64,000 nt of DNA. Source: Macrostomum lignano (lineage: Eukaryota). The position numbers and the translations under genes are program-made. The stretch spans positions 310,001-374,000 of the forward strand of contig NIVC01000980.1 in the NCBI GenBank assembly GCA_002269645.1. The letters run 5' to 3'. Of the stretch, positions 1,552-62,214 are shown one piece after another. A model generated the notes under the pieces. That model saw nothing but the letters and a program-made list of their open reading frames with translations. It was not told the origin of the DNA and made no database searches. Within the stretch, counting starts at the first letter, position 1; every line of letters begins with the position of its first letter.

Positions 1552-2721
1552 CTGTTTTAGGCCTCCTTGACTCAAGCCATGCAGCTCACTTTAGAACGCT
1601 ATAGCCTTGAAGTTGGGATAAAAAAGCCAGGGAGCTGTTTCTCCATCCAGCTTCCCATCGGATATTTTAAAGCTTGCTTCCTTCACTGGGATTTACTGGG
1701 CTGACAGCGCAAAGCTCTCTAATTGATTATACAAGCAGCGGATCCGGCCGACTCGAGAGCTGTGGGAGAATTTGAACCGAATCCTGTTCGATTGTCTTCA
1801 AAAGTTATTCTCGAGGCGAAGGAATCAGAGGGAAAAAACTGAAAAATGTTGCATTCGTGAAGCTGCTGGATGGATTGATGATGGATTTATCTTCAGTCTC
1901 AAATTACTCGAGTACGCTCCATGAGAGCTGAGCAGCTGAAGGTGTTTGCCAAGTAGAGTTCTCTCGCGCACTGCCACTTGATTGATTGATCCGGCAGCTC
2001 CGGAATCGGGAATGAAAGTTGAAAGGTTGGCCAACTTTCATCGCCCATCCCAATGGCACTTGAGGCTGCGCTGGCTTGGCCTCTCGCTTTACGAATTCGC
2101 ATCAGATTTCACCCCGGAGACCAAATTGTCAAATTGGTTCAAATTTTGCGATGCCAATCGATTTGCGTCTCAAATGTCTCAACTCGGCTTTAGCAGTAGC
2201 AGTTCTGCAGAAGATTAGCATGTAAAATATTAATAAACAGCCCTCGATATACTCGTGCCGGCATCTTTGGCGGCTATCAGCCGATCCTATGGGAGATTGG
2301 GGATAAATTAATGAGACAGCGAGTTAATCGTTTCGTAAAACTATTCGAAAATTTCACCTCTTAGCCGGGACTTCCTATGGTGGAGCAGTCACGCTTTCGA
2401 GGTTGGCATCTCTGGCCATGCAGGTGTGCCCGTCTCCACTTGCCGTTCTATTATCGCACTTAATTTGTGTCATGCAAGTTATGTAACACCTGGCTGACTC
2501 CAAACTGCGTCACTTCCTCTTGAAAATGGGAGATAGCTGGTCTGGGTGCTGGTCTGGGTGCCAGGTGGAGAGCTAGGGAAGTCTGCAACATCATTAATCT
2601 GTCCTGTTCCCAGTGCTCTGCTCCCACTTTTCTCTCGCTTTGCCGATCAAATTGCCGAACCTGATTTTGCTTCTAGTGCCCACTTTCCTCCTCTCGCCAC
2701 TCTGGGGCTGTCTGTCTTTAT

Positions 2722-4790
2722 ACTGTCAATTCACTGTCAATCTACTGTCAATTCACTGTCAATCTACTGTCAATCTACTGTCAATCTACTGTCAATCTAC
2801 TGTCAATTCACTGTCAATTCACTGTCAATCTACTGTCAATCTACTGTCAATCTACTGTCAATCTACTGTCAATTCACTGTCAATTCACTGTCAATCTACT
2901 GTCAATCTACTGTCAATTCACTGTCAATCTACTGTCAATCTACTGTCAATCTACTGTCAATCTACTGTCAATTCACTGTCAATTCACTGTCAATCTACTG
3001 TCAATCTACTGTCAATTCACTGTCAATCTACTGTCAATCTACTGTCAATCTACTGTCAATCTACTGTCAATTCACTGTCAATTCACTGTCAATCTACTGT
3101 CAATTCACTGTCAATTCACTGTCAATCTACTGTCAATCTACTGTCAATCTACTGTCAATTCACTGTCAATCTACTGTCAATCTACTGTCAATTCACTGTC
3201 AATTCACTGTCAATTCACTATCAATCTACTGTCAATCTACTGTCAATTCACTGTCAATCTACTGTCAATCTACTGTCAATTCACTGTCAATCTACTGTCA
3301 ATCTACTGTCAATCTACTGTCAATCTACTGTCAATTCACTGTCAATTCACTGTCAATCTACTGTCAATCTACTGTCAATCTACTGTCAATCTACTGTCAA
3401 TTCACTGTCAATTCACTGTCAATCTACTGTCAATCTACTGTCAATTCATGTCAATCTACTGTCAATCTACTGTCAATCTACTGTCAATCTACTGTCAATT
3501 CACTGTCAGTTTACTGTCAATATGCTGTCAATCTACTGTCAATTCACTGTCAATCTACTGTCAATCTACTGTCAATCTACTGTCAATTCACTGTCAATTC
3601 ACTGTCAATCTACTGTCAATCTACTGTCAATCTACTGTCAATTCACTGTCAATCTACTGTCAATCTACTGTCAATCTACTGTCAATTCACTGTCAATTCA
3701 CTGTCAATCTACTGTCAATCTACTGTCAATTCACTGTCAATCTACTGTCAATCTACTGTCAATCTACTGTCAATCTACTGTCAATTCACTGTCAATTCAC
3801 TGTCAATCTACTGTCAATTCACTGTCAATTCACTGTCAATTCACTATCAATCTACTGTCAATTCACTGTCAATTCACTGTCAATCTACTGTCAATCTACT
3901 GTCAATTCACTGTCAATCTACTGTCAATCTACTGTCAATCTACTGTCAATTCACTGTCAATTCACTGTCAATTCACTATCAATCTACTGTCAATCTACTG
4001 TCAATTCACTGTCAATCTACTGTCAATCTACTGTCAATTCACTGTCAATCTACTGTCAATCTACTGTCAATCTACTGTCAATCTACTGTCAATTCACTGT
4101 CAGTTTACTGTCAATATGCTGTCAATCTACTGTCAATTCACTGTCAATCTACTGTCAATCTACTGTCAATCTACTGTCAATTCACTGTCAATTCACTGTC
4201 AATCTACTGTCAATCTACTGTCAATTCACTGTCAATCTACTGTCAATTCACTGTCAATTCACTGTCAATTCACTATCAATCTACTGTCAATCTACTGTCA
4301 ATTCACTGTCAATCTACTGTCAATCTACTGTCAATTCACTGTCAATCTACTGTCAATCTACTGTCAATTCACTGTCAATTCACTATCAATCTACTGTCAA
4401 TCTACTGTCAATTCACTGTCAATCTACTGTCAATCTACTGTCAATCTACTGTCAATCTACTGTCAATCTACTGTCAATTCACTGTCAATCTACTGTCAAT
4501 CTACTGTCAATCTACTGTCAATCTACTGTCAATCTACTGTCAATTCACTGTCAATCTACTGTCAATTCACTGTCAATCTACTGTCAATCTACTGTCAATT
4601 CACTGTCAATCTACTGTCAATCTACTGTCAATTCACTGTCAATCTACTGTCAATCTACTGTCAATTCACAGTCAATCTACTGTCAATTCACTGTCAATCT
4701 ACTGTCAATTCACTGTCAATTCACTGTCAGTTTACTGTCAATATGCTGTCCATTTGCTGTCCATTCTGTTAACTGTCAGTTTACTGTCAA
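2722..4790. repeat. 11-bp minisatellite CTGTCAATCTA/CTGTCAATTCA
   Basis: About 2 kb of two alternating variants; explains ORFs 2546-4879, 2613-4772 and 3448-5379. Confidence 0.97.
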
Positions 4791-5110: not shown

Positions 5111-5789
5111 TTCTCTTTCATCTCTCCATTCCGCTGTCCCACAGTTTCAGTTTTCTCTTTCTTTCATCCCCAGCCATCATCGGCTTTCTGCTACAGCGGC
5201 ATTCTTCATTTTTCCATGCATTCTTAACCCTATTGTACTCTAAGAGGCTGGCCCCGATTGGATCGATGAACACCCTGCCAAGTCAGCCAGTCATACGCTT
5301 CATGTCACCGCGTTGTCGGGCGGTGGGTGGCGGCGGCAGCATTAATAATCCCTTCCCAACAAAAACTTCCCATTTTTAGCGAGCAGCCTCAATACTATGG
5401 TTAGAGAGTGGCACTTGTTGAGACCATGGCTGGCTTTTCTTCCGTCCCCTGACTGACTATATATATATATACACAGAGAGGCTGAACTGCGGTGCAATAA
5501 AATTTGCATAAGAGAAGGAAGCGACCGCCCACGAGGATCACAGCCGGCTCAGCTCACTGAGGTGGGTGGCAAGAGCCGGCAGCGATAAACTGATTCAATA
5601 ATTTGCTAAATTAAATTGCCGCAAAAAGCTAAGGGAATTTTAGATGAGAAGGCTGCGACGGATGGACAGACAACCTTGAGCAAATCTTGGACTGGAGTCT
5701 TGCCGACTTGAATAAGAATGATTAAAACTGTAATGCCATTTTCCCTTAGGCTAATTTACATTAGACTAGGCTGTCCCAGTCTCACACCG

Positions 5790-6160
5790 CCACCCTCCCA
5801 GATCCTCAGTTGCTGGGCCAGCCTCCCAGATCCTCAGTTTCTAGGCAAGCCTCCCAGATCCTCAGTTGCTGGGCAAGCCTCACAGATCCTCAGTTGCTGG
5901 GCCAGCCTCCCAGATCCTCAGTTGTTGGGCCAGCCTCCCAGATCCTCAGTTGCTGGGCAAGCCTCACAGATCCTCAGTTGCTGGGCCAGCCTCCCAGATC
6001 CTCAGTTGTTGGGCCAGCCTCCCAGATACTCAGTTGCTGGGCCAGCCTCCCAGATCCTCAGCTGCTGGGCCAGCCTCCCAGATCCTCAGTTGCTGGGCCA
6101 GACTCCCAGATACTCAGTTGCTGGGCCAGACTCCCAGATACTCAGTTGCTGGGCCAAGCC
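5790..6160 (+). repeat. 28-bp minisatellite family A (GCTGGGCCAGCCTCCCAGATCCTCAGTT), locus 1
   Basis: About 13 units. Confidence 0.95.
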
Positions 6161-6180
6161 TCTAAGATTCTTATCCTTAT

Positions 6181-6516: not shown

Positions 6517-6784
6517 TGGCTGTTGTCCGCAGGATAAAAGCGGGGGTCCCAGACATTTAGCGAATAAATAAATCGATAAAAAGTTGCGCTGATAAATGAG
6601 GCCCGGGAAAGCAAACTGGCCAGATTGGGAGCAAGGCACTCTTGAGGAGAGGGGAGTTTACTAAACCCCAACTCTTCTGTAACGATGTTCCCAAAGAAAA
6701 GTGCAATCGTGTATAGGCCTGATAGAAATTCCAATGCACTATTGAATCCAAACACACTGAATTCACTGTTGCAATAATATCATC

Positions 6785-6990
6785 AGTTGTTGGGCAGCCT
6801 CCCAGATCCTCAGTTGTTGGGCCAGACTCCTGGATCCTCAGTTGCTGGGCCAGCCTCCCAGATCCTCAGTTGCTGGGCCAGCCTCCCAGATCCTCAGTTG
6901 CTGGGCCAGCCTCCCAGATCCTCAGTTGCTGGGCCAGCCTCCCAGATCCTCAGTTGCTGGGCCAGCCTCCCAGATCCTCAGTTGCTGGGC
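6785..6990 (+). repeat. 28-bp minisatellite family A, locus 2
   Basis: About 7 units, same unit as 5790-6160. Confidence 0.95.
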
Positions 6991-7654
6991 CACAGCAAAG
7001 CTCGCCAATAATAAAATTGCTTTGGCAGTCAAATATGTAAATAGAAACAGCATTTCAGCCAAAACTTTCATGGATAGATTTAGACACACAGAGAGAGTGG
7101 GAGGGAGAGAGAGAGAGAGAGAGAGAGCGGCAGAGAATTATTCCTCGCGATGCGCTCCACAAATAACGCCACAGAAACGTCAGTACAGATTAGTAGCTGA
7201 GCCCGCACGCCCCGCGGAAATCTCTAAGGAAGCCACGCGGCGCCTCCTTGCGTCATTCAGGAAGCCTTGCTCACGAGCAGCTACGCTCGCCCGAACTCCA
7301 CAGCGAATTCCATAATCAAAATGGACGGCCACGGCCGTCTGTCTCATTTTTGAGTCCGCGTGCCGCGCTGAAATTGCGGCAAATTGATTGCGTAACAATG
7401 ATGAGGCAATTATTTTTGAGTGAATCATGGAGTTCTGCCGATTGGTGATTGCTTTTCTCAATCAGAAACAGAGGGAACTGAGTTTTTGACTTTCTGCAGA
7501 ATGTAAAATATCGAAACAAAATGTCTTGAAAAAGAGGCTTATTTTCTTTATCAGTAGTAATATTCGTGTTTTTTAATTTTAACTGAAAGGAAAATTAGCA
7601 GTTATTCTATTGTGCAATAACAGCTGTGGTGTTTATTAGGAGCAACTGTATGGG

Positions 7655-7908: not shown

Positions 7909-10900
7909 TTAGTCCAGCTGAAGTTGTATTCCTCGCGTCAGTCCGACAGCGCCAGGCGCCAGCAGTTGGCGCCAGACCGAGGCGCAGTCGGGCCGATCGG
8001 CTCTCCAGGTGAGCAGCAGGGAGCCGGCGGGCTGCCACGGCAGTCGCGGCAGACTTTCCGGACTGCCGAGTTCCACGGCGATCTCCAGTCGCGCTTCGGT
8101 CAGCGACGCGGCCGGCAGGGGAAACCTGACGGCTTTGTGCGACCACCGGAAATTCCCGATTGACGCCGCCGCCGGAGACTGCGGCGGAACGGGCGGCCAC
8201 TTGCGCAGCTTGACGCAGCGGCCTCCGGGCGTCAGGCGCAGGCGGATGGCGACCCTGCAGCTGTAGAGGCGTCCGGAATCCTGCGGCAGCGGTAGGGCGG
8301 TGCACTCCAGAAGGCGCACGAAGAGGTCCAGCCGTTCGCCCTCTGCCGCGGCCGTCGGCGTCGTCTCCAGCAGGATTCGGCCGCGGCTTTCGGGCGGACA
8401 GCTGACTGGCCGCTCCAGGCGCTTCCACATGCATAGGCGGTGACCTCCTTGAAGGTCGGGCTGGACCAGGCCGGTGCCCAGGATGATGACGCTGCTGCCC
8501 TTCCTGCTGCTGCTGTTGTTGTCAGCTGCGGAATCGAACTTGCAACCTCTGTCTTTGGCTAAAACATCAGTTTGGTGTGTTATTTTGGCATGTCCGTAAT
8601 GGCTAATGAATCTGAGCTAACTGTTGCTAATGAATCTGAGCTAACTGTTGCTAATGAATCTGAGCTATTGCTAATGAATCTGAGCTAATTGTTGCTAATG
8701 AATCTGGGCTAATTGTTGCTAATGAATCTGGGCTAATTGTTGCTAATGAATCTGAGCTAATTGTTGCTAATGAATCTGAGCTAACTGTTGCTAATGAATC
8801 TGAGCTATTGCTAATGAATCTGAGCTAATTGTTGCTAATGAATCTGGGCTAATTGTTGCTAATGAATCTGGGCTAATTGTTGCTAATGAATCTGAGCTAA
8901 TTGTTGCTAATGAATCTGAGCTAATTGTTGCTAATGAATCTGAGCTAATTGTTGCTAAGAATCTGAGCTAATTGTTGCTAATGAATCTAAGCTAATTGTT
9001 GCTAATGAATCTGAGCTAATTGTTGCTAATGAATCTGAGCTAATTGTTGCTAATGAATCTGAGCTAATTGTTGCTAATGAATCTGAGCAAACTGTTGCTA
9101 ATGAATCTGAGCTAACTGTTGCTAATGAATCTGAGCTAATTGTTGCTAATGAATCTGGGCTAATTGTTGCTAATGAATCTGGGCTAATTGTTGCTAATGA
9201 ATCTGGGCTAATTGTTGCTAATGAATCTGGGCTAATTGTTGCTAATGAATCTGAGCTAATTGTTGCTAATGAATCTGGGCTAATTGTTGCTAATGAATCT
9301 GAGCTAATTGTTGCTAATGAATCTGAGCTAATTGTTGCTAATGAATCTGGGCTAATTGTTGCTAATGAATCTGAGCTAATTGTTGCTAATGAATCTAAGC
9401 TAATTGTTGCTAATGAATCTGAGCTAATTATTGCTAATGAATCTAAGCTAATTGTTGCTAATGAATCTGAGCTAATTATTGCTAATGAATCTGAGCTAAT
9501 TGTTGCTAATGAATCTAAGCTAATTGTTGCTAATGAATCTGAGCTAATTGTTGCTAATGAATCTGAGCAAACTGTTGCTAATGAATCTGAGCTAATTGTT
9601 GCTAATGAATCTGAGCTAACTGTTGCTAATGAATCTGAGCTAACTGTTGCTAATGAATCTGAGCTAATTGTTGCTAATGAATCTGAGCTAACTGTTGCTA
9701 ATGAATCTGAGCTAATTGTTGCTAATGAATCTGAGCTAACTGTTGCTAATGAATCTGAGCTAATTGTTGCTAATAAATCTGAGCTAACTGTTGCTAATGA
9801 ATCTGAGCTAATTGTTGCTAATGAATCTGAGCTAACTGTTGCTAATGAATCTGAGCTAATTGTTGCTAATAAATCTGAGCTAACTGTTGCTAATGAATCT
9901 GAGCTAATTGTTGCTAATGAATCTGAGCTAACTGTTGCTATTACAAGCGCGTACTATAAGCTAATTTTAGTTAATGTGCTGAGCTAATTTCTTTTAATTT
10001 CAGTAAAATGCTTTGATCGCACCGTAACCTCGCTCGCAGCTTCCAGTCCCAGAATTCCGATTGTCAACCGACTCATCGGTTGCCATAGCAACAATTCGCA
10101 GCAGCTCCAGCTGGATTTTGGGCTTCACAACTCCAACGGGACAGTCGGAAATCCGGAACACCGTGGGGGCGCCCGAAGCGGTGCACCAGTTGTGAGCTGG
10201 CGATGCCGCCGTGCTGAGCTCCTCGCTCTTGAGGCGGCACGGACCGTCAAAGGTGACCACCAGGCGGCACTGGTAGCTGCTGTGCTGCTGCTCGCCAGCC
10301 TCCTCGGGCTCCCCGACCTGCTCCTGGCTAAGGCACGGCCGTGCCTTCACGATGCCGATGCTGTAAACCCGCTCAGCCGGGTTGCTCTGTACAAACAGCA
10401 GCAGCAGTCAGTCTGCTGGCCCGCACGGACCTGCGAAGGTGTGGGATGGCAGCCAGTATGGTCTGATTGGGGAATGGGTGTGGGATGGCAGCCAATCTGG
10501 TCTGATTGGGGAATGGGTGTGGGATGGCGGCCAATCTGGTCTGATTGGGGAATGGGTGTGGGATGGCAGCCAGTCTGGTCTGATTGGGGAATGGGTGTGG
10601 GATGGCAGCCAATCTGGTCTGATTGGGGAATGGGTGTGGGATGGCAGCCAATCTGGTCTGATTGGGGAATGGGTGTGGGATGGCGGCCAATCTGGTCTGA
10701 TTGGGGAATGGGTGTGGGATGGCAGCCAATCTGGTCTGATTGGGGAATGGGTGTGGGATGGCAGCCAATCTGGTCTGATGGGGGAATGGGTGTGGGATGG
10801 CAGCCAGTCTGGTCTGATTGGGGAATGGGTGTGGGATGGCAGCCAATCTGGTCTGACTGGGGAATGGGTGTGGGATGGCGGCCAATCTGATCTGACTGGG

Positions 10901-13900
10901 GAATGGGTGTGGGATGGCGGCCAATCTGATCTGACTGGGGAATGGGTGTGGGATGGCAGCCAATCTGGTCTGATTGGGGAATGGGTGTGGGATGGCAGCC
11001 AATCTGGTCTGATTGGGGAATGGGTGTGGGATGGCAGCCAATCTGGTCTGATTGGGGAATGGGTGTGGGATGGCAGCCAATCTGGTCTGATTGGGGAATG
11101 GGTGTGGGATGGCAGCCAATCTGGTCTGATTGGGGAATGGGTGTGGGATGGCAGCCAATCTGGTCTGATTGGGGAATGGGTGTGGGATGGCAGCCAGTCT
11201 GGTCTGATTGGGGAATGGGTGTGGGATGGCAGCCAATCTGGTCTGACTGGGGAATGGGTGTGGGATGGCGGCCAATCTGATCTGACTGGGGAATGGGTGT
11301 GGGATGGCAGCCAATCTGGTCTGATTGGGGAATGGGTGTGGGATGGCAGCCAATCTGGTCTGATTGGGGAATGGGTGTGGGATGGCAGCCAATCTGGTCT
11401 GATTGGGGAATGGGTGTGGGATGGCAGCCAATCTGGTCTGATGGGGGAATGGGTGTGGGATGGCAGCCAATCTGGTCTGATTGGGGAATGGGTGTGGGAT
11501 GGCAGCCAATCTGGTCTGATTGGGGAATGGGTGTGGGATGGCAGCCAATCTGGTCTGATTGGGGAATGGGTGTGGGATGGCAGCCAATCTGGTCTGATTG
11601 GGGAATGGGTGTGGGATGGCAGCCAGTCTGGTCTGATTGGGGAATGGGTGTGGGATGGCAGCCAATCTGGTCTGACTGGGGAATGGGTGTGGGATGGCGG
11701 CCAATCTGATCTGACTGGGGAATGGGTGTGGGATGGCGGCCAATCTGATCTGACTGGGGAATGGGTGTGGGATGGCAGCCAGTATGGTCTGATTGGGGAA
11801 TGGGTGTGGGATGGCAGCCAATCTGGTCTGATTGGGGAATGGGTGTGGGATGGCAGCCAATCTGGTCTGATTGGGGAATGGGTGTGGGATGGCAGCCAAT
11901 CTGGTCTGATTGGGGAATGGGTGTGGGATGGCAGCCAGTCTGGTCTGATTGGGGAATGGGTGTGGGATGGCAGCCAATCTGGTCTGATTGGGGAATGGGT
12001 GTGGGATGGCAGCCAATCTGGTCTGATTGGGGAATGGGTGTGGGATGGCAGCCAATCTGGTCTGATTGGGGAATGGGTGTGGGATGGCAGCCAGTCTGGT
12101 CTGATTGGGGAATGGGTGTGGGATGGCAGCCAATCTGGTCTGATTGGGGAATGGGTGTGGGATGGCAGCCAATCTGGTCTGATTGGGGAATGGGTGTGGG
12201 ATGGCAGCCAGTCTGGTCTGATTGGGGAATGGGTGTGGGATGGCAGCCAATCTGGTCTGATTGGGGAATGGGTGTGGGATGGCAGCCAATCTGGTCTGAT
12301 TGGGGAATGGGTGTGGGATGGCGGCCAATCTGGTCCGACTGGGGAATGGGTGTGGGATGGCAGCCAATCTGGTCTGACTGGGGAATGGGTGTGGGATGGC
12401 GGCCAATCTGATCTGACTGGGGAATGGGTGTGGGATGGCAGCCAATCTGGTCTGATTGGGGAATGGGTGTGGGATGGCAGCCAATCTGGTCTGATTGGGG
12501 AATGGGTGTGGGATGGCAGCCAATCTGGTCTGATTGGGGAATGGGTGTGGGATGGCAGCCAATCTGGTCTGATGGGGAATGGGTGTGGGATGGCAGCCAA
12601 TCTGGTCTGATTGGGGAATGGGTGTGGGATGGCAGCCAATCTGGTCTGATTGGGGAATGGGTGTGGGATGGCAGCCAATCTGGTCCGACTGGGGAATGGG
12701 TGTGGGATGGCAGCCAGTCTGGTCTGATGGGGGTTTTAACTCATTAAATTTAGAACATCATGCCTTTTAACTTCAGTTGCGAATTATCTAAAGCTTAAAA
12801 AACTGTACTCACTACTATCTAAGCAGCCATTTTCAGTAGTAGCACCGCATTCACTAAGCCAGGTAATAAGTTGACTGAGAGCCCCCTGATTAAGGACCTA
12901 GCAATCGGGGTCTTAACAAGCTCTGAGTGGCTCATGCGTGTCAAGGCAGGGGCTTAGCTTACAGGTACGCGGACGGGCCCTCATTCCGACGCAGTTAATT
13001 GGCTGTTTCGAAAGAGTTCCGCCTACTTAATTTGGCAAAATAGCTCGGCCTAGGGGAAGCCGCTAGTTCGAACTTTGAAAGCAGGAAAGAAAAATTTGGC
13101 AGAAAAATACACAAAGGCGCTATAGGGGTCGGAAAAGTGAATCGTTCATGCTGAGTTGACTAAAACAGGCCTTTAGAAGGCACCGATGAAGTGCTAGCAC
13201 ACTAAGGAATTTTAAGGTGTATTAGAAGGAACAGGCTGTGCTAGAAGGGCAAGGTGTGCTAGAAGGAACAGGGTGTGCTAGAAGGGCAAGGTGTGCTAGA
13301 AGGAACAGGGTGTGCTAGAAGGGACAGGTGTGCTAGAAGGGACAGGTGTGCTAGAAGGGCAAGGTGTGCTAGAAGGGACAGGCTGTGCTAGAAGGGACAG
13401 GCTGTGCTAGAAGGGACAGGCTGTGCTAGAAGGGACAGGTGTGCTAGAAGGGACAGGCTGTGCTAGAAGGGACAGGCTGTGCTAGAAGGGACAGGCTGTG
13501 CTAGAAGGGACAGGTGTGCTAGAAGGGCAAGGTGTGCTAGAAGGAACAGGGTGTGCTAGAAGGGCAAGGTGTGCTAGAAGGAACAGGGTGTGCTAGAAAG
13601 GACAGGTGTGCTAGAAGGGACAGGTGTGCTAGAAGGGCAAGGTGTGCTAGAAGGGACAGGTGTGCTAGAAGGGACAGGTGTGCTAGAAGGGACAGGTGTG
13701 CTAGAAGGGACAGGTGTGCTAGAAGGGACAGGGTGTGCTAGAAGGGACTGGTGTGCTAGAAGGGACAGGTGTGCTAGAAGGGACAGGTGTGCTAGAAGGG
13801 ACAGGTGTGCTAGAAGGGACAGGTGTGCTAGAAGGGACAGGCTGTGCTAGAAGGGACAGGGTGTGCTAGAAGGAACAGGGTGTGCTAGAAGGGACAGGTG

Positions 13901-14321
13901 TGCTAGAAGGGACAGGTGTGCTAGAAGGGACAGGTGTGCTAGAAGGGACAGGGTGTGCTAGAAGGGACAGGTGCTGCTCACCATCCGCAGGCTGCACAAG
14001 CTGCAGCCTCTCCATGACATTCAAATGAAACTGGTTGCCAAGCTGCAGCCGGTCGAAGTCGAAGTCAAATTGAAACGGACCGACAGCAGCGAGCGACTCC
14101 GGCTGCACCTCGGCGATGCTGGTCTCAACGCAGGGGGTCGGCTGCGGCTTCACCAGCTGGTCGGCGACTTCGGTCGTCACTGCTGACGCCTCCCCGATGT
14201 GGACTGTCGGCTTTCGTTGTCGGCGAAGCCAGAGAAGCCACAGAGCGGCAGCCGCGGCGGCCAGCAGGACCGCAGCAGCGAAGGCGCAGGCGGCGGCGAG
14301 GCCGGCGTCTTCTGCTCGCAT
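7909..14321 (-). CDS. Synaptotagmin-like protein (N-terminal TM, degenerate C2, C2); 3 exons; in-frame TGA in exon 2
   Basis: Exons 14321-13982 ([31 protein letters not shown] then RRQRK, donor G|GTGAG phase 1); 10430-10023 or -10029 (acceptor cttcgcAG, C2-like [25 protein letters not shown], phase 1-1, TGA at 10410-10408); 8558-7909 (acceptor gtttt[12 protein letters not shown] motif, C2-like RGRILLE...[15 protein letters not shown]). All junctions are in phase. Canonical Ca-binding Asp residues are not evident. Confidence 0.65.
8601..9941. repeat. 24-bp minisatellite CTAATGAATCTGAGCTAATTGTTG
   Basis: About 55 units filling synaptotagmin-like intron 2. Confidence 0.97.
10437..12731. repeat. 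39-bp G-rich minisatellite GGGAATGGGTGTGGGATGGCAGCCAATCTGGTCTGATTG
   Basis: About 59 units in synaptotagmin-like intron 1; source of several 13-aa-periodic ORFs. Confidence 0.97.
13222..13972. repeat. 18/19-bp minisatellite GTGCTAGAAGGGACAGGT
   Basis: About 40 units ending 9 nt from the donor at 13981. Confidence 0.95.
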
Positions 14322-14613: not shown

Positions 14614-15412
<799 letters not shown>

Positions 15413-15593
15413 AGCTAACCAGCAGGCATCATGCCGCTCTGGACCAATCACAGCTGAGCTGACAGGGGAAACACAAGCTACATTCGCGCCTCATTTAAAT
15501 GCCTCAGTTCGAGCTCAGGTCCTCACTGACGATAAGGAGTCTAGGTTTCTATATTCTACAGTTACCTAATACTAGATAAACCGCTGGCGGCTA

Positions 15594-15944
15594 ATGATGA
15601 GGCATCAGACAGCCGCCCTGTTGCTAACCGCGCTTCTCTGTGTTGCTGGAGCCGCTATGGCCGGCCCGCTACGATGGCCCCAGGAGTTCGGTGAGTACTT
15701 TTTAGAGCACCTTTAGATATTCAAAAGATCTGCAATAAGATCTCTAACCCAACTGGCAGGCGTTGAAGATGACGAACTGGTGCAGCCTCCGCCTCCGCTG
15801 CCTGACTGGCCAGAAGAGCCGCTGCTTGGCACCGACTTTGGCTTCGAGGAGGTGCAGCCGCAGCCGCCGCAACAGCCGCTGATTCTGCCGCGGTTCAGCA
15901 AGAGGTGCCGACTGAATGACTACAGAGCCTGCCCGATTGGATGA
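15594..15944 (+). CDS. Neuropeptide precursor, 93 aa; predicted mature cyclic peptide CRLNDYRACPIG (vasopressin/oxytocin-like, no neurophysin)
   Basis: Exon 1 15594-15690 MMRHQTAALLLTALLCVAGAAMAGPLRWPQEF (signal peptide, donor G|GTGAGT); 69-bp intron; exon 2 15760-15944 with acidic Pro-rich spacer, dibasic KR (15900-15905), CRLNDYRACPIG, TGA 15942-15944. Confidence 0.85.
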
Positions 15945-16555
15945 ACATGGCGCTGCTTTCTCTTCTTGAAGAAAAAGTACTTTAACAATGCTCCAGCAAG
16001 CTTTGTATACAGTTGGCGATTAAAACAAGAAAATCTCTGGCGGATTGCAGTTTTGCCTGTTTTTTGCCGACTTGGGCGGTCATATTTTCTGTCTTGTTTT
16101 CTCAATGGATGGCTATAATCGCTATATTATTAGAACGGAGATCAATTACAACGCGATAACATTGTATCCATGGCAGACTCAATGGATACACCAAAGAAAG
16201 CAAAGGAATTGTTGACGAATTTTGTCAGCTGGAATTAGCTCTAGACGATTGTAATTCTGCTTATTTTCAGAGATAAGCATCTGAAGGATGAAATGGGTGA
16301 ACAAAGCAAAATTTTCCAGATAGCAATTTCAGTTTTTTTGGCACTGAATTCCAAATAAAGCAAGAAAGTGTTTCGTTAGATCGGTTCACTCAACATTTTA
16401 TGAAGAAAACGCTTGAAAAAATATTTGAAAATATGAAAAATATGAGCGACAAACCAATGTTGTGTTTTTTAAACAGATTTAGCAAAGATTTGCTTTTTGT
16501 ACTTCATGTATAACTAGCCTGATTTATCTGTGAGTACATCTCACACTAAACACAC

Positions 16556-19421: not shown

Positions 19422-22400
19422 ATGACACAAGAAACCTTGCAGCAGCAGCAACAGCAACAAGTTCTCACTGTGCGCGGAGTCAATCTGACTGTCGAGGGTG
19501 GACGGCAGATTCTGCACAATGTACACCTGACGGCCAAGTCTGGATCTATGCTGGCCGTTATGGGACCCAGTGGTTAGTGAGACTGAATTGTTATTATCTT
19601 TAAAATCCAATGCTAATTTACAGAATTAACATAAGCAAGCTTAGAAACTGATCACACCTGCGAATATCAGTCCAGAGATAATCACACCTGAGAATATCAG
19701 TGCAGAGATTATCACACCTGTGAATATCAGTCCAGAGATTATCACACCTGTGAATATAACTCCAGAGAAGATCACGCGTGAGAATACCAGTCTAGAGAAG
19801 ATCAGATGTGAGAATACCAGTCTAGAGATCACACCTGAGTAATATCAATCCAGAGATTATCACACGTGAGAATACCAGTCTAGAGAAGATCACATGTGAG
19901 AATACCAGTCTAGAGAAGATCACACGTGAGAATACCAGTCTAGAGAAGATCACATGTGAGAATACCAGTCTAGAGAAGATCACACGTGAGAATACCAGTC
20001 TAGAAAAGATCACATGTGAGAATACCAGTCTAGAGAAGATCACATGTGAGAATACCAGTCTAGAGAAGATCACATGTGAGAATACCAGTCTAGAGAAGAT
20101 CACATGTGAGAATGCCAGTCTAGAGAAGATCACATGTGAGAATACCATGCAGTCTAGAGAAGATCACACGTGAGAATACCAGTCTAGAGATCACACGTGA
20201 GAATACCAGTCTAGAGATCACACGTGAGAATACCAGTCTAGAGATCACACGTGAGAATACCAGTCTAGAGAAGATCACACGTGAGAATACCAGTCTAGAG
20301 ATCACACGTGAGAATATCGCGTATCAACCGACGGACCACGGGGGGACCACGTCCAAGACCAGGATCAATAAAATATACGCTAAGTAACTAAGTAGCATGG
20401 CAAAAACTTAAACAGTAACTAAAATAATTTCTCAATAAAAAACGAATCCCCATGCAGGCTCCGGCAAGACCAGCCTCATGAACCTCATCTGCGGCAGGAG
20501 GCCGCCCTCCTCAACCATGGACGGTGAAATTCTGCTCAATAATCGAAAAGTCACTTCCCGGATGAGGAAAAGCTTTGGCTACGTTACTCAGGAGGACGTC
20601 TTTTTTAGTCAGCTCACACTCAAGCAGACTCTCTGGGTTTGTTCAACTGTCGATATTATGGGATCTCTAATTCGGGATCAATACCTGGCTAATGGGATCT
20701 CTAATTGGGGATTAATGCTTAAATGATGAGATCTCTGTTTAGAGATAAACACCTGAAAAATTGGAACAGTCTTATTATTGATTTGTGATTGCCTAAATCA
20801 CTCTTCGTTACCCTTGTCTGATTTCAGTTTTTCTCCCAGGTGAAGCTGCCCAGCTCAATGACCGCTAAAGACAAGGAGAAACGAGTTAACGAAGTCGTTG
20901 AACTACTGCAGTTGACCAAGTGCCTCGATACAAGTGAGGCTGTCCGCGATGTCTAACTAGCAGAGTTTATTGGGAGAACGATTAATTTCTGGGTGACCAA
21001 GTCAAGTTTCGGGGAAAGTGACGTCTCGCTAAGTGTCACGTTAGCCGATAACTTAGAGTCAAATTGAGCTAAAAATAGAAACGCAAAGGAATCTCCAAGG
21101 GCACTGACCTTGGTAGTCATAGTGACGCCCTTTCCCATATCCCCCGCAGAGATCGGCGGCATGTCAGATCAGGGCCTCTCAGGCGGTGAGAAGAAGCGAG
21201 CAAACATCGCCTGCGAGTTGCTGCGCAATCCCAAGGTGCTACTGCTGGACGAGCCGACCTCCGGATTGGACTCCAGCCTAGCGCTCAAACTGATGGAGAT
21301 CCTTGGCCGCTGGGTGGTTGAGCAGAGCAGCATCGTGGTCACCAGTATTCACCAGCCGTCGTCGCAGACGTTTCACGAGTTTCACGAACTGCTCCTACTG
21401 GCAGACGGGCAGATCGCCTACTCGGGTAGGCGGGAGCTGATGGTGGAGTACTTTGAGGGCATCGGGGTGCCGTTCCACAAGCACTGGAATGCGGCCGACT
21501 TCATGCGTGAGTTTGTGTGCGATCTCTAATTAGCATTGCATAATTAATTAGCTGTCACCAGGTTGTCTGCTTTTTGGGAGCAGGAGAGGGCGAGAAACTG
21601 TCACGTGTACTTATATTTACCTAACCGGATGTCAGGGGTTGTCAGATATTCTATGTCATTGTTTGTCAAGGGTGGGTTGCCAAACTGTGTCAGTTAGCAC
21701 TCAATCGAGCATCTTGAACCCGCAGTGGAGGTGGTGAAGGAGAGCTCCCAGCACAAGGCGCACATCCTTGAGAACGGCAGGCAGTTCGCGGAGCGGGCCA
21801 AGCAGGAACAGCAGCAGCTGGCATCGGCCAGCGCCTCCCAGGTGCACCTGAACCTGTCCTACCAGGCCGATGCCGGTTCCAGGCAGAACGGATTGGCAGG
21901 TCTGGACGAGGGCTCGGTGCGCATCCGGTTCACCAGTCCGGATTTCTCTCCGCAGGCGGCGGCGGCAAAACTGCAGGACGACTCTGAAGGCGTTCACCTG
22001 GTGCATGAAGTCAGCTGGTGGACTCAATTCCTAGCGCTGAGCTATCGCGGCTTCCTGGTTTCCCGGGAAGCCATCCTGTCTGTGCAGGTGCTGGTACAGA
22101 CCGCCTTTGTGGCCTTCATTGTTAGCGTGCTGTGGTTCCAGGTGGCCAAGACTGAGAATAACATTGCCGATTTTATTTCTGCGGTGAGTCGTTAACGGGA
22201 TTTGACTTCTAGTGGGGGATTTGGGATCAGACTTCTAGTGTGGGATTTGGGTTCAGGGGTTTGGGATCTAACTTCTGTTGGGGAATTTGGGATCTGGGAT
22301 CTGAATTTTAATGGGGGATCAGGGATTTCAGATTTGGGATCTGACTTTTAGTGGGAGATCTGGGATCTGGGATCCGAAATCGGACTTTTCATAGGATTTG

Positions 22401-24212
22401 GGATCTGGGATTTGAATCTGGAGTCTGGGATTGGAGCTTCAACTGGAATTTAAGCCGGGATCGCTATTTAATAATAATCATGTACATGTGCTGAAATTTT
22501 AATTAAACTTCAGATTTTCTTCCTAACAAGCTACGTAACTTTTGCACCGTTCTTCGAAGCCATAATGACGTGTAAGTCAGTTCTATAAAAACAGCATTCT
22601 TCTCTATTCCCAAGATATCCCGCGCGACCTCGTGTGACCTTTTCCTCCATTATCGCTCCCCGTTCGCATTCCCGGCAGTCTACGCCGACTTGGCCATAGT
22701 GAGGCACGAGCGCAAGTCCGGCATGTACCGCATTGGCGCTTACTACCTGGCCAAGATGGTGGTGGAGATCCCGCTGCTGCTGGTGGTGCCCATCTTCATC
22801 ATCGCGCCAGCTTATTGGTGCGTTGGCTTTGCCGACTTTAGCGCCTTCGCGGCCTTCCTAGTGGTCATCACCTTGAATAGCCTGGCCTCGCAGGTGAGCT
22901 CCGGCTGGCGGGGTAGCTCAGCAGCCAGCGTGTCAAAGTCTCTGGGTTCGAATAGGTCGAGGCTCTTGTCGTGCGATTCGTGTCCGTGAGGGCCAACCCC
23001 CCAAGGCACAGAGAGTTGTACAGAGAGATTAGAAAGTCAGGGCATCGACTGATTTGCCTTCTCGCTGGGTCCGCGCTGACAGTGGCCTTGATCTGCGGCA
23101 GCGCCCACACCCCTCCCCTTGCGAACTAACTGAATATACCGAGGGACGGGGACGCAAACACAGACACCGAGACAATGAGACACAAAGACACATAGACACA
23201 AAAACACAGCCACTGAGAAACAAAGACACCGAAAGACACCGAGACACAAAGACACCGAGACACAAATATACCGAGACACAAGGACAAAGACACTGACACT
23301 GAGACACAAAGACACCGAGACAATAAGACACAAAGACACCGAGACAATGAGACACAAAGACACCGAGACAATGAGACACAAAGACACCGAGACAATGAGA
23401 CACAAAGACACAGACAAAGACACCGAGACAATGAGACACAAAGACAGACACAAAGACGGACACTTCAAAGCTGAGAAATTCACTTCCAGTCTACTCCTCA
23501 GTAGTGAGAAAGGTTTTCCTGTCGCCAAATTCACTGTAGGGCATCGGAATCGTCTTCAGCCTCCTGTCCACCAATCCGAGAACGAACATGACCTTTGCCT
23601 TCATCTACATGATTTTCTGCTTTCTGACTGGTGAGTAGGTTTCTCAAAATTGTGTCAGTTAGCGCACTCCAGTTGGCAATGACCCGCAGCCTCCCAGATT
23701 AGAAGCAAAACCCGCAACCAACATTGCACAGGCGGATTCTTCACTAAAAGCATCCCGTTCTGGTTCGACTGGGCCAAATACCTGTCCTATATTCGCTACT
23801 GCTATCACTTCGGTCTCATAATCATACTGGAGAGGACGGACGATTTTCGGTGAGCTGTAGGAGTCAGCGGAATGAGTAGAACTGCTTTCAGAGCTGGTTG
23901 TGGGGCGATGTCGCCTGAAGGCGTTGCTCCAGGTTGCCCGCAACCCTAGCTTCTGCAAATAATTTTATACCAATCTCGCCATCATCAAATTTATTAAACA
24001 GATGCGGCGAGCCCAGCCTCTATGCGGTGTGCAATAGGAACAGCACCGCAGGAAACAGCACAGCACCGCTCACCATTCCGGGCTCAGTGATTCTCGAACT
24101 GCAGCCCGACACCATCTTGCCTGTGTGGGCCAACATTATCGTCACTGTCTGTATGTTCTTCGCCTTTCGCCTGCTGGGCTACGTGATCCTGCGCTTCTGT
24201 CGGAAAGTTTAG
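19422..24212 (+). CDS. ABCG: ABC transporter subfamily G half-transporter (white/ABCG-like), 10 exons, 647 aa
   Basis: join(19422-19572,20458-20636,20828-20933,21150-21506,21726-22183,22514-22571,22679-22893,23540-23630,23732-23849,24002-24212); all GT-AG and in phase, 1944 nt. Walker A MGPSGSGKT, Q-loop YVTQED, signature LSGGEKKR, Walker [13 protein letters not shown]-loop [13 protein letters not shown] motif, C-terminal TM helices. Confidence 0.95.
19648..20312. repeat. 30-bp minisatellite GATCACACGTGAGAATACCAGTCTAGAGAA (ABCG intron 1)
   Basis: About 22 units containing CACGTG/CATGTG and TCTAGA. Confidence 0.95.
22205..22440. repeat. Degenerate GGGATTTGGGATCT repeat (ABCG intron 5)
   Basis: Read directly. 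Confidence 0.7.
23155..23462. repeat. 24-bp repeat GACACAAAGACACCGAGACAATGA (ABCG intron 7)
   Basis: Read directly. Confidence 0.88.
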
Positions 24213-25011: not shown

Positions 25012-25866
25012 CCACCCTCCCAGATACTCAGTTGCTGGACCAGCCTCCCAGACCCTCAGTTGCTGGGCCATCCACCCAGATCCTCAGTTGCTGGGCCAGC
25101 CTCCCAGATCCTCAGTTGCTGGGCCAGCCTCCCAGATCCTCAGTTGCTGTGCCAGCTTCCCAGACCCTCAGTTACTGGGCCAACCTCCCAGATCCTCAGT
25201 TGCTAGGCCAGCCTCCCAGATCCTCAGTTGCTTGGCCAGCCTCTCAGATCCTCAGTGTTGCTGGGCCAGCCTCCCAGATCCTCAGTTGCTGGGCCAGCCT
25301 CCCAGATCCTCAGTCGCTGGGCCAGCCTCCCAGACCCTCAGTTACTGGGCCAACCTCCCAGATCCTCAGTTGCTGGGCCAGCCTCCCAGATCCTCAGTGT
25401 CTGGGCCAGCCTGGCAGATCCTCAGTTGCTGGGCCAGCCTGGCAGATCCTCAGTTGCTGGGCCAGCCTCTCAGATCATCAGTTGCCAGGCCAGCCTCCCA
25501 AGTCCTCAGTGTCTGGGCCAGCCTCCCAGGTCCTCATTGTCTGGGCCAGCCTCCTAGAGTGTCAGTTGCTGGGCCAGCCTCCCAGATCCTCAGTTGCTGG
25601 GCCAGCCTCCCAGATCCTCAGTCGCTGGGCCAGCCTCCCAGATCCTCAGTTGCTGGGCCAGCCTCCCAGACCCTCAGTTGCTGCTTGCTGGGCATCCACC
25701 CAGATCCTCAGTTGCTGGGCCAGCCTCCGAGATCCTCAGTTGCTGTGCCAGCCTCCCAGACCCTCAGTTACTGGGCCAACCTCCCAGATCCTCAGTTGCT
25801 TGGCCAGCCTCTCAGATCCTCAGTGTTGCTGGGCCAGCCTCCCAGATCCTCAGTTGCTGGGCAGCC
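25012..25866 (+). repeat. 28-bp minisatellite family A, locus 3
   Basis: About 30 units between the convergent ABCG and SBF genes. Confidence 0.95.

Positions 25867-27026: not shown

Positions 27027-62214
<35,188 letters not shown>

Follow-up and report, generated by a model that had tools for sequence, protein, structure and literature searches.

The stretch of Macrostomum lignano DNA analysed here (the window, 64,000 nt) carries, at 15594-15944 on the forward strand, a two-exon gene whose coding sequence, spliced in silico, comprises 282 nt (93 codons plus TGA) and is translated into the 93-residue product MMRHQTAALLLTALLCVAGAAMAGPLRWPQEFGVEDDELVQPPPPLPDWPEEPLLGTDFGFEEVQPQPPQQPLILPRFSKRCRLNDYRACPIG, followed by the stop. 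The two-exon precursor of 93 residues with its 69-bp intron, as put forward in the original prediction, was reproduced exactly, and the other elements claimed for it (a signal peptide, an acidic Pro-rich spacer, a single Lys-Arg site and a terminal CRLNDYRACPIG directly before the stop) are all present in the sequence. The gene and its immediate surroundings are laid out as follows, the promoter and polyadenylation elements coming from a motif scan:

15444-15448, forward strand: CCAAT, a possible promoter element by consensus match only; invariant in the three genomic copies
15494-15499, forward strand: TTTAAA, a possible TATA-like element by consensus match only, about 95 nt 5' of the ATG; the block is conserved in 3/3 copies
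15594-15690, forward strand: coding exon 1 (97 nt), with the ATG at 15594, the signal peptide (residues 1-23, 15594-15662) and the start of the propeptide; ends in phase 1 and is identical to PAA74047.1
15691-15759, forward strand: intron (69 nt), phase 1, donor G/GTGAGT and acceptor CAG/G
15760-15944, forward strand: exon 2 (185 nt), from the splice product and reading frame
15760-15899, forward strand: spacer part of exon 2 (the rest of residues 33-79), acidic and Pro/Gln-rich, with no dibasic site
15900-15905, forward strand: Lys80-Arg81 (AAG AGG), the sole dibasic site, of prohormone-convertase type, read from the sequence
15906-15941, forward strand: predicted mature peptide CRLNDYRACPIG, with a putative C82-C90 ring (seven residues between the Cys) and Gly93 as potential amide donor
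15942-15944, forward strand: TGA stop, directly 3' of the Gly93 codon, read from the sequence
16019, forward strand: ATTAAA, an alternative candidate polyadenylation signal
16354-16359, forward strand: AATAAA, a candidate polyadenylation signal by consensus match only, about 410 nt 3' of the stop

The intron carries an in-frame stop codon and must therefore be spliced out, the unspliced frame ending after 40 amino acids; a branch-like CTAAC motif lies within it at 15744-15748, 12 nt 5' of the acceptor. GC content is about 0.63 (0.628) in the coding sequence but drops to about 0.38 (0.377) within the intron and to 0.375 within the 3' flank. The gene had been described as absent from the track of open reading frames, which is correct and is explained by the prokaryote-style construction of that list, in which only fragments of 40 and 54 amino acids are found. 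It had also been described as hidden, and this part of the claim did not survive, since GenBank already holds the same protein: a single cluster emerged from a homology search, with identity and coverage both at 100%, namely PAA74047.1 (hypothetical protein BOX15_Mlig011818g3 [Macrostomum lignano]), which is encoded on contig NIVC01000980.1 of assembly GCA_002269645.1, position 15594 of the window being position 315594 of the contig. The GenBank annotation of M. lignano comprises the 'coregenes' subset of a transcriptome assembled from RNA-seq data with genome guidance (StringTie/TACO, TBONE, TransDecoder; Wudarski et al. 2017, PMC5730564), so that the model was built from RNA-seq transcripts and the splice is supported indirectly. 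The gene for this secreted precursor is real, annotated before and uncharacterised; a literature search found neither the peptide string nor the gene identifier in any paper searched, and the supplements of three M. lignano transcriptome papers (PMC5816591, PMC7336406, PMC12896417) do not list the Mlig011818 identifier.

Two further copies of the gene are located on other contigs, g1 (PAA70106.1) and g2 (PAA59721.1), each 98% identical, and every one of the three copies lies about 3.3-3.5 kb 5' of an ABCG-type transporter gene. In the window, this neighbour is an ABCG-type half-transporter gene at about 19422-24212 on the forward strand (647 aa, ABC_tran and ABC2_membrane domains), 3.5 kb 3' of the precursor gene. 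The position of g1 and g2 beside an ABCG gene is consistent with the duplicated blocks that make up 180-312 Mb of the M. lignano assembly (PMC5730564). Across the three copies, the coding sequence differs by seven substitutions in 282 nt, four synonymous and three nonsynonymous (T6P and T12S in the signal peptide, L46P in the spacer), with no indel and no stop, and the 45-nt block encoding the Lys-Arg site, the peptide and the stop (15900-15944) shows no difference at all; the alignment of the 3' flank (349 nt) shows 10 substitutions along with 42 gap columns. As the copies are 97-99% alike, flanks and intron included, purifying selection cannot be demonstrated from them, and the comparison amounts to a frame that is intact three times. 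Upstream of all three copies there is also an (ACTG)n/(ACTA)n microsatellite, which in the window spans 795 bp (14616-15410) and ends 34 nt 5' of the CCAAT motif.

These data bear on a sceptical view of the locus, namely that it is transcribed, with an open reading frame that yields no functional product and was called by TransDecoder by chance in a GC-rich, low-complexity transcript. We consider this unlikely. The searches found no homolog, the copies show no measurable constraint (7/282 variable sites in the coding sequence versus 4/182 in the 5' flank), and the middle part of the precursor, the spacer, is of low complexity (CCG/CAG-rich) and overlapped by an antisense ORF of 62 aa, all of which would suit a chance frame. 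Such a frame would nevertheless have to combine by coincidence a signal peptide with an AxA cleavage motif, a phase-1 intron just after it, one dibasic site, two Cys around a short loop and a Gly followed by the stop; moreover, the three copies are free of indels in the coding sequence, versus many in the flank, and GC at the three codon positions is 0.72/0.48/0.68, a high third-position value being shared with the exons of the adjacent ABCG gene.

The N-terminus displays n, h and c regions like those of a signal peptide, with a hydrophobic core at residues 6-20 (Kyte-Doolittle 9-residue means up to 2.98) and a predicted cut after A21-M22-A23 (AMA/G, -3/-1); the signal-peptide and cleavage calls are rule-based and not from a trained predictor. 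The spacer (residues 24-79) has a pI of 4.05 and a charge of about -9, and is rich in Pro and Gln. Beyond the signal peptide, C82 and C90 are the only Cys, and the last residue is Gly93. A signal peptide, a convertase site, an amidation donor and a small size, the generic rule-based marks of a neuropeptide or hormone precursor, are thus found together. The signal peptide would direct the protein co-translationally into the secretory pathway, where C82 and C90 would be oxidised to a disulfide and a convertase of the PC2 or PC1-3 type would cut after K80-R81, freeing the C-terminal 12-mer. With Phe at P4, the Lys-Arg pair does not fit the furin pattern R-x-K/R-R, and this favours processing in the regulated pathway. 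Peptidylglycine alpha-amidating monooxygenase (PAM) may then use Gly93 to generate cyclic CRLNDYRACPI-NH2, most likely an extracellular signal that presumably acts via a GPCR. The two products originally predicted, a 12-mer free acid or an amidated 11-mer ending in CPI-NH2, follow from the Lys-Arg site and the Gly-stop; their computed monoisotopic [M+H]+ values are 1378.635 (2+ 689.821) for the free acid and 1320.630 (2+ 660.819) for the amidated cyclic 11-mer. A single small amidated peptide with a disulfide ring is the probable product of the gene, and we give a probability of about one half to the reading in which its 93-residue, prohormone-type prepropeptide is the source of a processed extracellular signalling peptide, similar to a neuropeptide or hormone.

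The original prediction went further and proposed a divergent hormone of the vasopressin/oxytocin (VP/OT) type, possibly related to platytocin. Its structural reading of the peptide (a C-X7-C ring, a C-P-x-G tail, a C-terminal position and no neurophysin) agrees with the sequence and with the Pfam scan, but the family assignment does not hold up, as the C-P-x-G tetrapeptide is the only one of the defining features that is present. The precursor does resemble those of VP/OT peptides, platytocin included (PMC8896804), in being secreted and in containing a Cys-bridged, probably amidated peptide whose second Cys is directly followed by Pro and, two residues further on, by Gly. However, the VP/OT nonapeptide ring is C-X4-C (Cys1-Cys6), with four residues between the Cys, whereas the ring here, C-RLNDYRA-C, is C-X7-C; the VP/OT peptide directly follows the signal peptide, whereas this one is C-terminal and begins at residue 82, 58 residues past the predicted cut after residue 23. 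The VP/OT precursors continue with Gly-Lys-Arg and neurophysin, and their peptides end in Gly-NH2. Here C-P-I-G is followed by the stop and not by G-K-R, so that the lone Gly would be spent as amide donor and leave Ile-NH2, not Gly-NH2. A Pfam scan with hmmscan, run at E<=10, yielded no match to Hormone_4 or Hormone_5 (neurophysin, PF00184), and residue 93 is the last of the protein.

The homology matches likewise include no VP/OT precursor, yet the Lymnaea conopressin precursor, used as a control query, readily retrieved 16 proteins with PF00184, from gastropods only. Kobayashi et al. 2022 (PMC8896804) have described VP/vasotocin precursor genes of M. lignano (PAA85176.1, PAA50340.1, PAA46766.1 and PAA87831.1), which, by these accessions and the statement of that paper, are reported as loci different from the three copies of the precursor gene; the same authors describe platytocin as fitting the neurohypophyseal motif. 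As for the tail itself, P-x-G is expected after Cys by chance in about 0.4% of peptides, an estimate from residue frequencies. That a hormone of this type could have arrived at the present form by enlarging its ring, relocating the peptide to the C-terminal end and losing neurophysin is therefore highly improbable, in spite of the C-P-x-G tail, the Cys-bridged ring with an Asn inside it, and the report that M. lignano has no clear VP/OT receptor ortholog, which would allow for an unusual VP system in this species (PMC8896804). Judged by its sequence, the gene is not a member of the VP/OT family, and such membership is largely refuted. A bolder variant would make the gene the founder of a family of cyclic amidated neuropeptides (C-X7-C-P-I-NH2) confined to macrostomids, in which the C-P-x-G tail is the relic of a VP/OT gene after neurophysin loss and ring expansion; we hold this to be far-fetched, but if true, a peptide of VP/OT descent would for the first time be known apart from neurophysin and with a non-canonical ring, and this in an animal that reportedly lacks a clear VP/OT receptor. 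A useful caution is that a C-P-x-G tail alone is no proof of a VP/OT peptide.

In its architecture, the precursor is closer to those of somatostatin, allatostatin-C, urotensin-II and MCH, which share a signal peptide, a long non-conserved spacer, a basic site and one C-terminal disulfide peptide within about 100 aa. A single cyclic C-terminal peptide after a basic site is indeed found here (K80-R81 and a 12-residue Cys-bridged end), a likeness of architecture only. The ring motifs of these families (FWKT, Y/F-F-N-P in allatostatin-C, CFWKYC and MLGRVYRPC) are all missing from this precursor, and its ring of seven residues differs from those of 10, 6, 4 and 8 residues in somatostatin, allatostatin-C, urotensin-II and MCH, respectively. 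These peptides are also generally without amidation, and MCH is not known from protostomes. The Pfam scan gave no somatostatin or Pro-MCH match, and the homology searches returned no member of these four families. Contryphan precursors and CCAP offer another parallel: in each case the peptide is short, amidated and closed into one disulfide loop, and the mature contryphan is C-terminal and followed by a Gly amide donor. They differ in their C-X5-C ring, in the lack of any sequence similarity and in context, contryphans being products of the venom gland and CCAP belonging to a multi-site neuropeptide context. The likeness to somatostatin-type and contryphan-type precursors is one of functional analogy, not of membership.

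Beyond the species, a word-indexed search of 5.8 billion protein clusters matched the M. lignano cluster only. An exhaustive phmmer search of 1.84 billion representatives returned three other matches, A0A1I8FR66, A0A1I8FLP7 and one protein of 4034 aa from Polarella. All three were rejected as orthologs, the Polarella (dinoflagellate) protein on account of a low-complexity match and the other two as error-laden old models of M. lignano itself. These UniProt entries, derived from an older assembly, contain frame-shifted versions of exon 2; A0A1I8FLP7 includes a fusion with the ABCG gene, and 'YbaB/EbfC family DNA-binding protein' is the name given to one of the two models. They look like annotation artefacts and could mislead homology searches. 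A metagenome scan produced no locus that was confirmed by tblastn, and nothing of relevance came from Pfam or NCBIfam, where the sole match, to Phage_OMP on the signal peptide, was below threshold. In the PDB, the segment FSKRCRLNDYRAC matched the Sel1-like repeats of the Helicobacter cysteine-rich proteins HcpB/HcpC: RFSKRCRLNDYRAC (residues 77-90, 15891-15932) resembles the y-S-K-A-C-x-L-N-D-x-x-x-C of the Hcp repeats, which likewise have a C-X7-C spacing. We judged this match to be coincidental, because its total is inflated by summed repeats (the per-repeat i-Evalue is 260 or worse) and the precursor contains no 36-aa alpha/alpha repeat. No homolog outside M. lignano was found in any collection searched, and other Macrostomum genomes and transcriptomes were apparently not part of these collections. 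By these comparisons the precursor is an orphan and no demonstrable member of the VP/OT, somatostatin-type or contryphan-type families. Candidate orphan cyclic amidated peptide precursor is a reasonable label for it, and a new cyclic peptide family, the fallback offered alongside the VP/OT assignment, is plausible.

Orphan genes for secreted peptide prohormones (spp) are common in flatworms; Schmidtea has 19 of them (Collins et al. 2010, PMC2953531). Like the gene described here, the planarian spp genes are small and flatworm-restricted, with a signal peptide, basic sites and Gly amide donors and no homologs outside flatworms. They differ in having peptidomic support for their products, that of the present precursor being predicted; in addition, the prohormone families of Schmidtea (Table S4, PMC2953531) are linear (RL/RMamide, RFamide, Wamide, planarin and others), insulin being the only disulfide-ring family named.

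The signal peptide and the orphan status would also fit a non-neural secretory product (of a gland, of prostate or seminal fluid, of the epidermis or of defence), in the form of a small cyclic peptide or of an unprocessed, acidic, Pro-rich protein of 70 aa. The plan of a signal peptide, an acidic propeptide, a Lys-Arg site and a C-terminal Cys-looped peptide is indeed shared by the precursors of amphibian skin peptides and conopeptides. Brand et al. 2020 (PMC7336406) describe a rapid evolution of reproduction-related genes in Macrostomum, and such evolution would fit the lack of detectable homologs; the gene identifier was, however, not found in the supplementary tables of that paper, which may list subsets. 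The Lys-Arg site without Arg at P4 favours convertases of the regulated pathway over furin, and a terminal Gly amide donor with a single compact peptide is most typical of neuropeptides and hormones. We view a non-neural product as a possible, though less likely, alternative to the signalling peptide.

If the cyclic peptide is made and neuronal, a disulfide-ring amidated peptide would be added to the flatworm neuropeptide repertoire, and it would be a compact candidate ligand for GPCR deorphanisation in M. lignano, a model with transgenesis (PMC5730564). Should it instead be secreted by a gland or belong to the seminal fluid, or should the frame stay untranslated, the gene would be one of many lineage-restricted small secreted ORFs, of little wider interest.

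The remainder of the window is marked by a very high load of tandem repeats (70 TRF rows in window 1-64000). The arrays include a 38-bp unit repeated 86 times (27761-31025), a 48-bp unit repeated 65 times (54965-58074), a 39-bp unit repeated 59 times (10438-12733) and an 11-bp unit repeated 186 times (2721-4761), and such repeats account for long spurious frames (1240 aa at most) in the mechanical list of ORFs. The 28-bp minisatellite unit CCAGCCTCCCAGATCCTCAGTTGCTGGG and its rotations form arrays at 5789-6162, 6779-6992, 25012-25866 and 39435-39706, and its occurrence at four places suggests a dispersed satellite or a repeat-carrying element. A large SBF/MTMR5/13-like gene lies on the reverse strand, with exons at about 27027-58785 that encode uDENN/DENN domains (58114-58785), a myotubularin-related domain (31348-33399) and C1 and PH domains (27027-27800); its introns are full of minisatellite arrays, and the ORF of its last exon continues into the 38-bp repeat. 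Finally, an ORF of 151 aa on the reverse strand (13866-14321), which is absent from the gene calls for this locus, adjoins an 18-bp tandem array and combines an Ala/Leu-rich, transmembrane-like N-terminus with a tail of PVPSST repeats.
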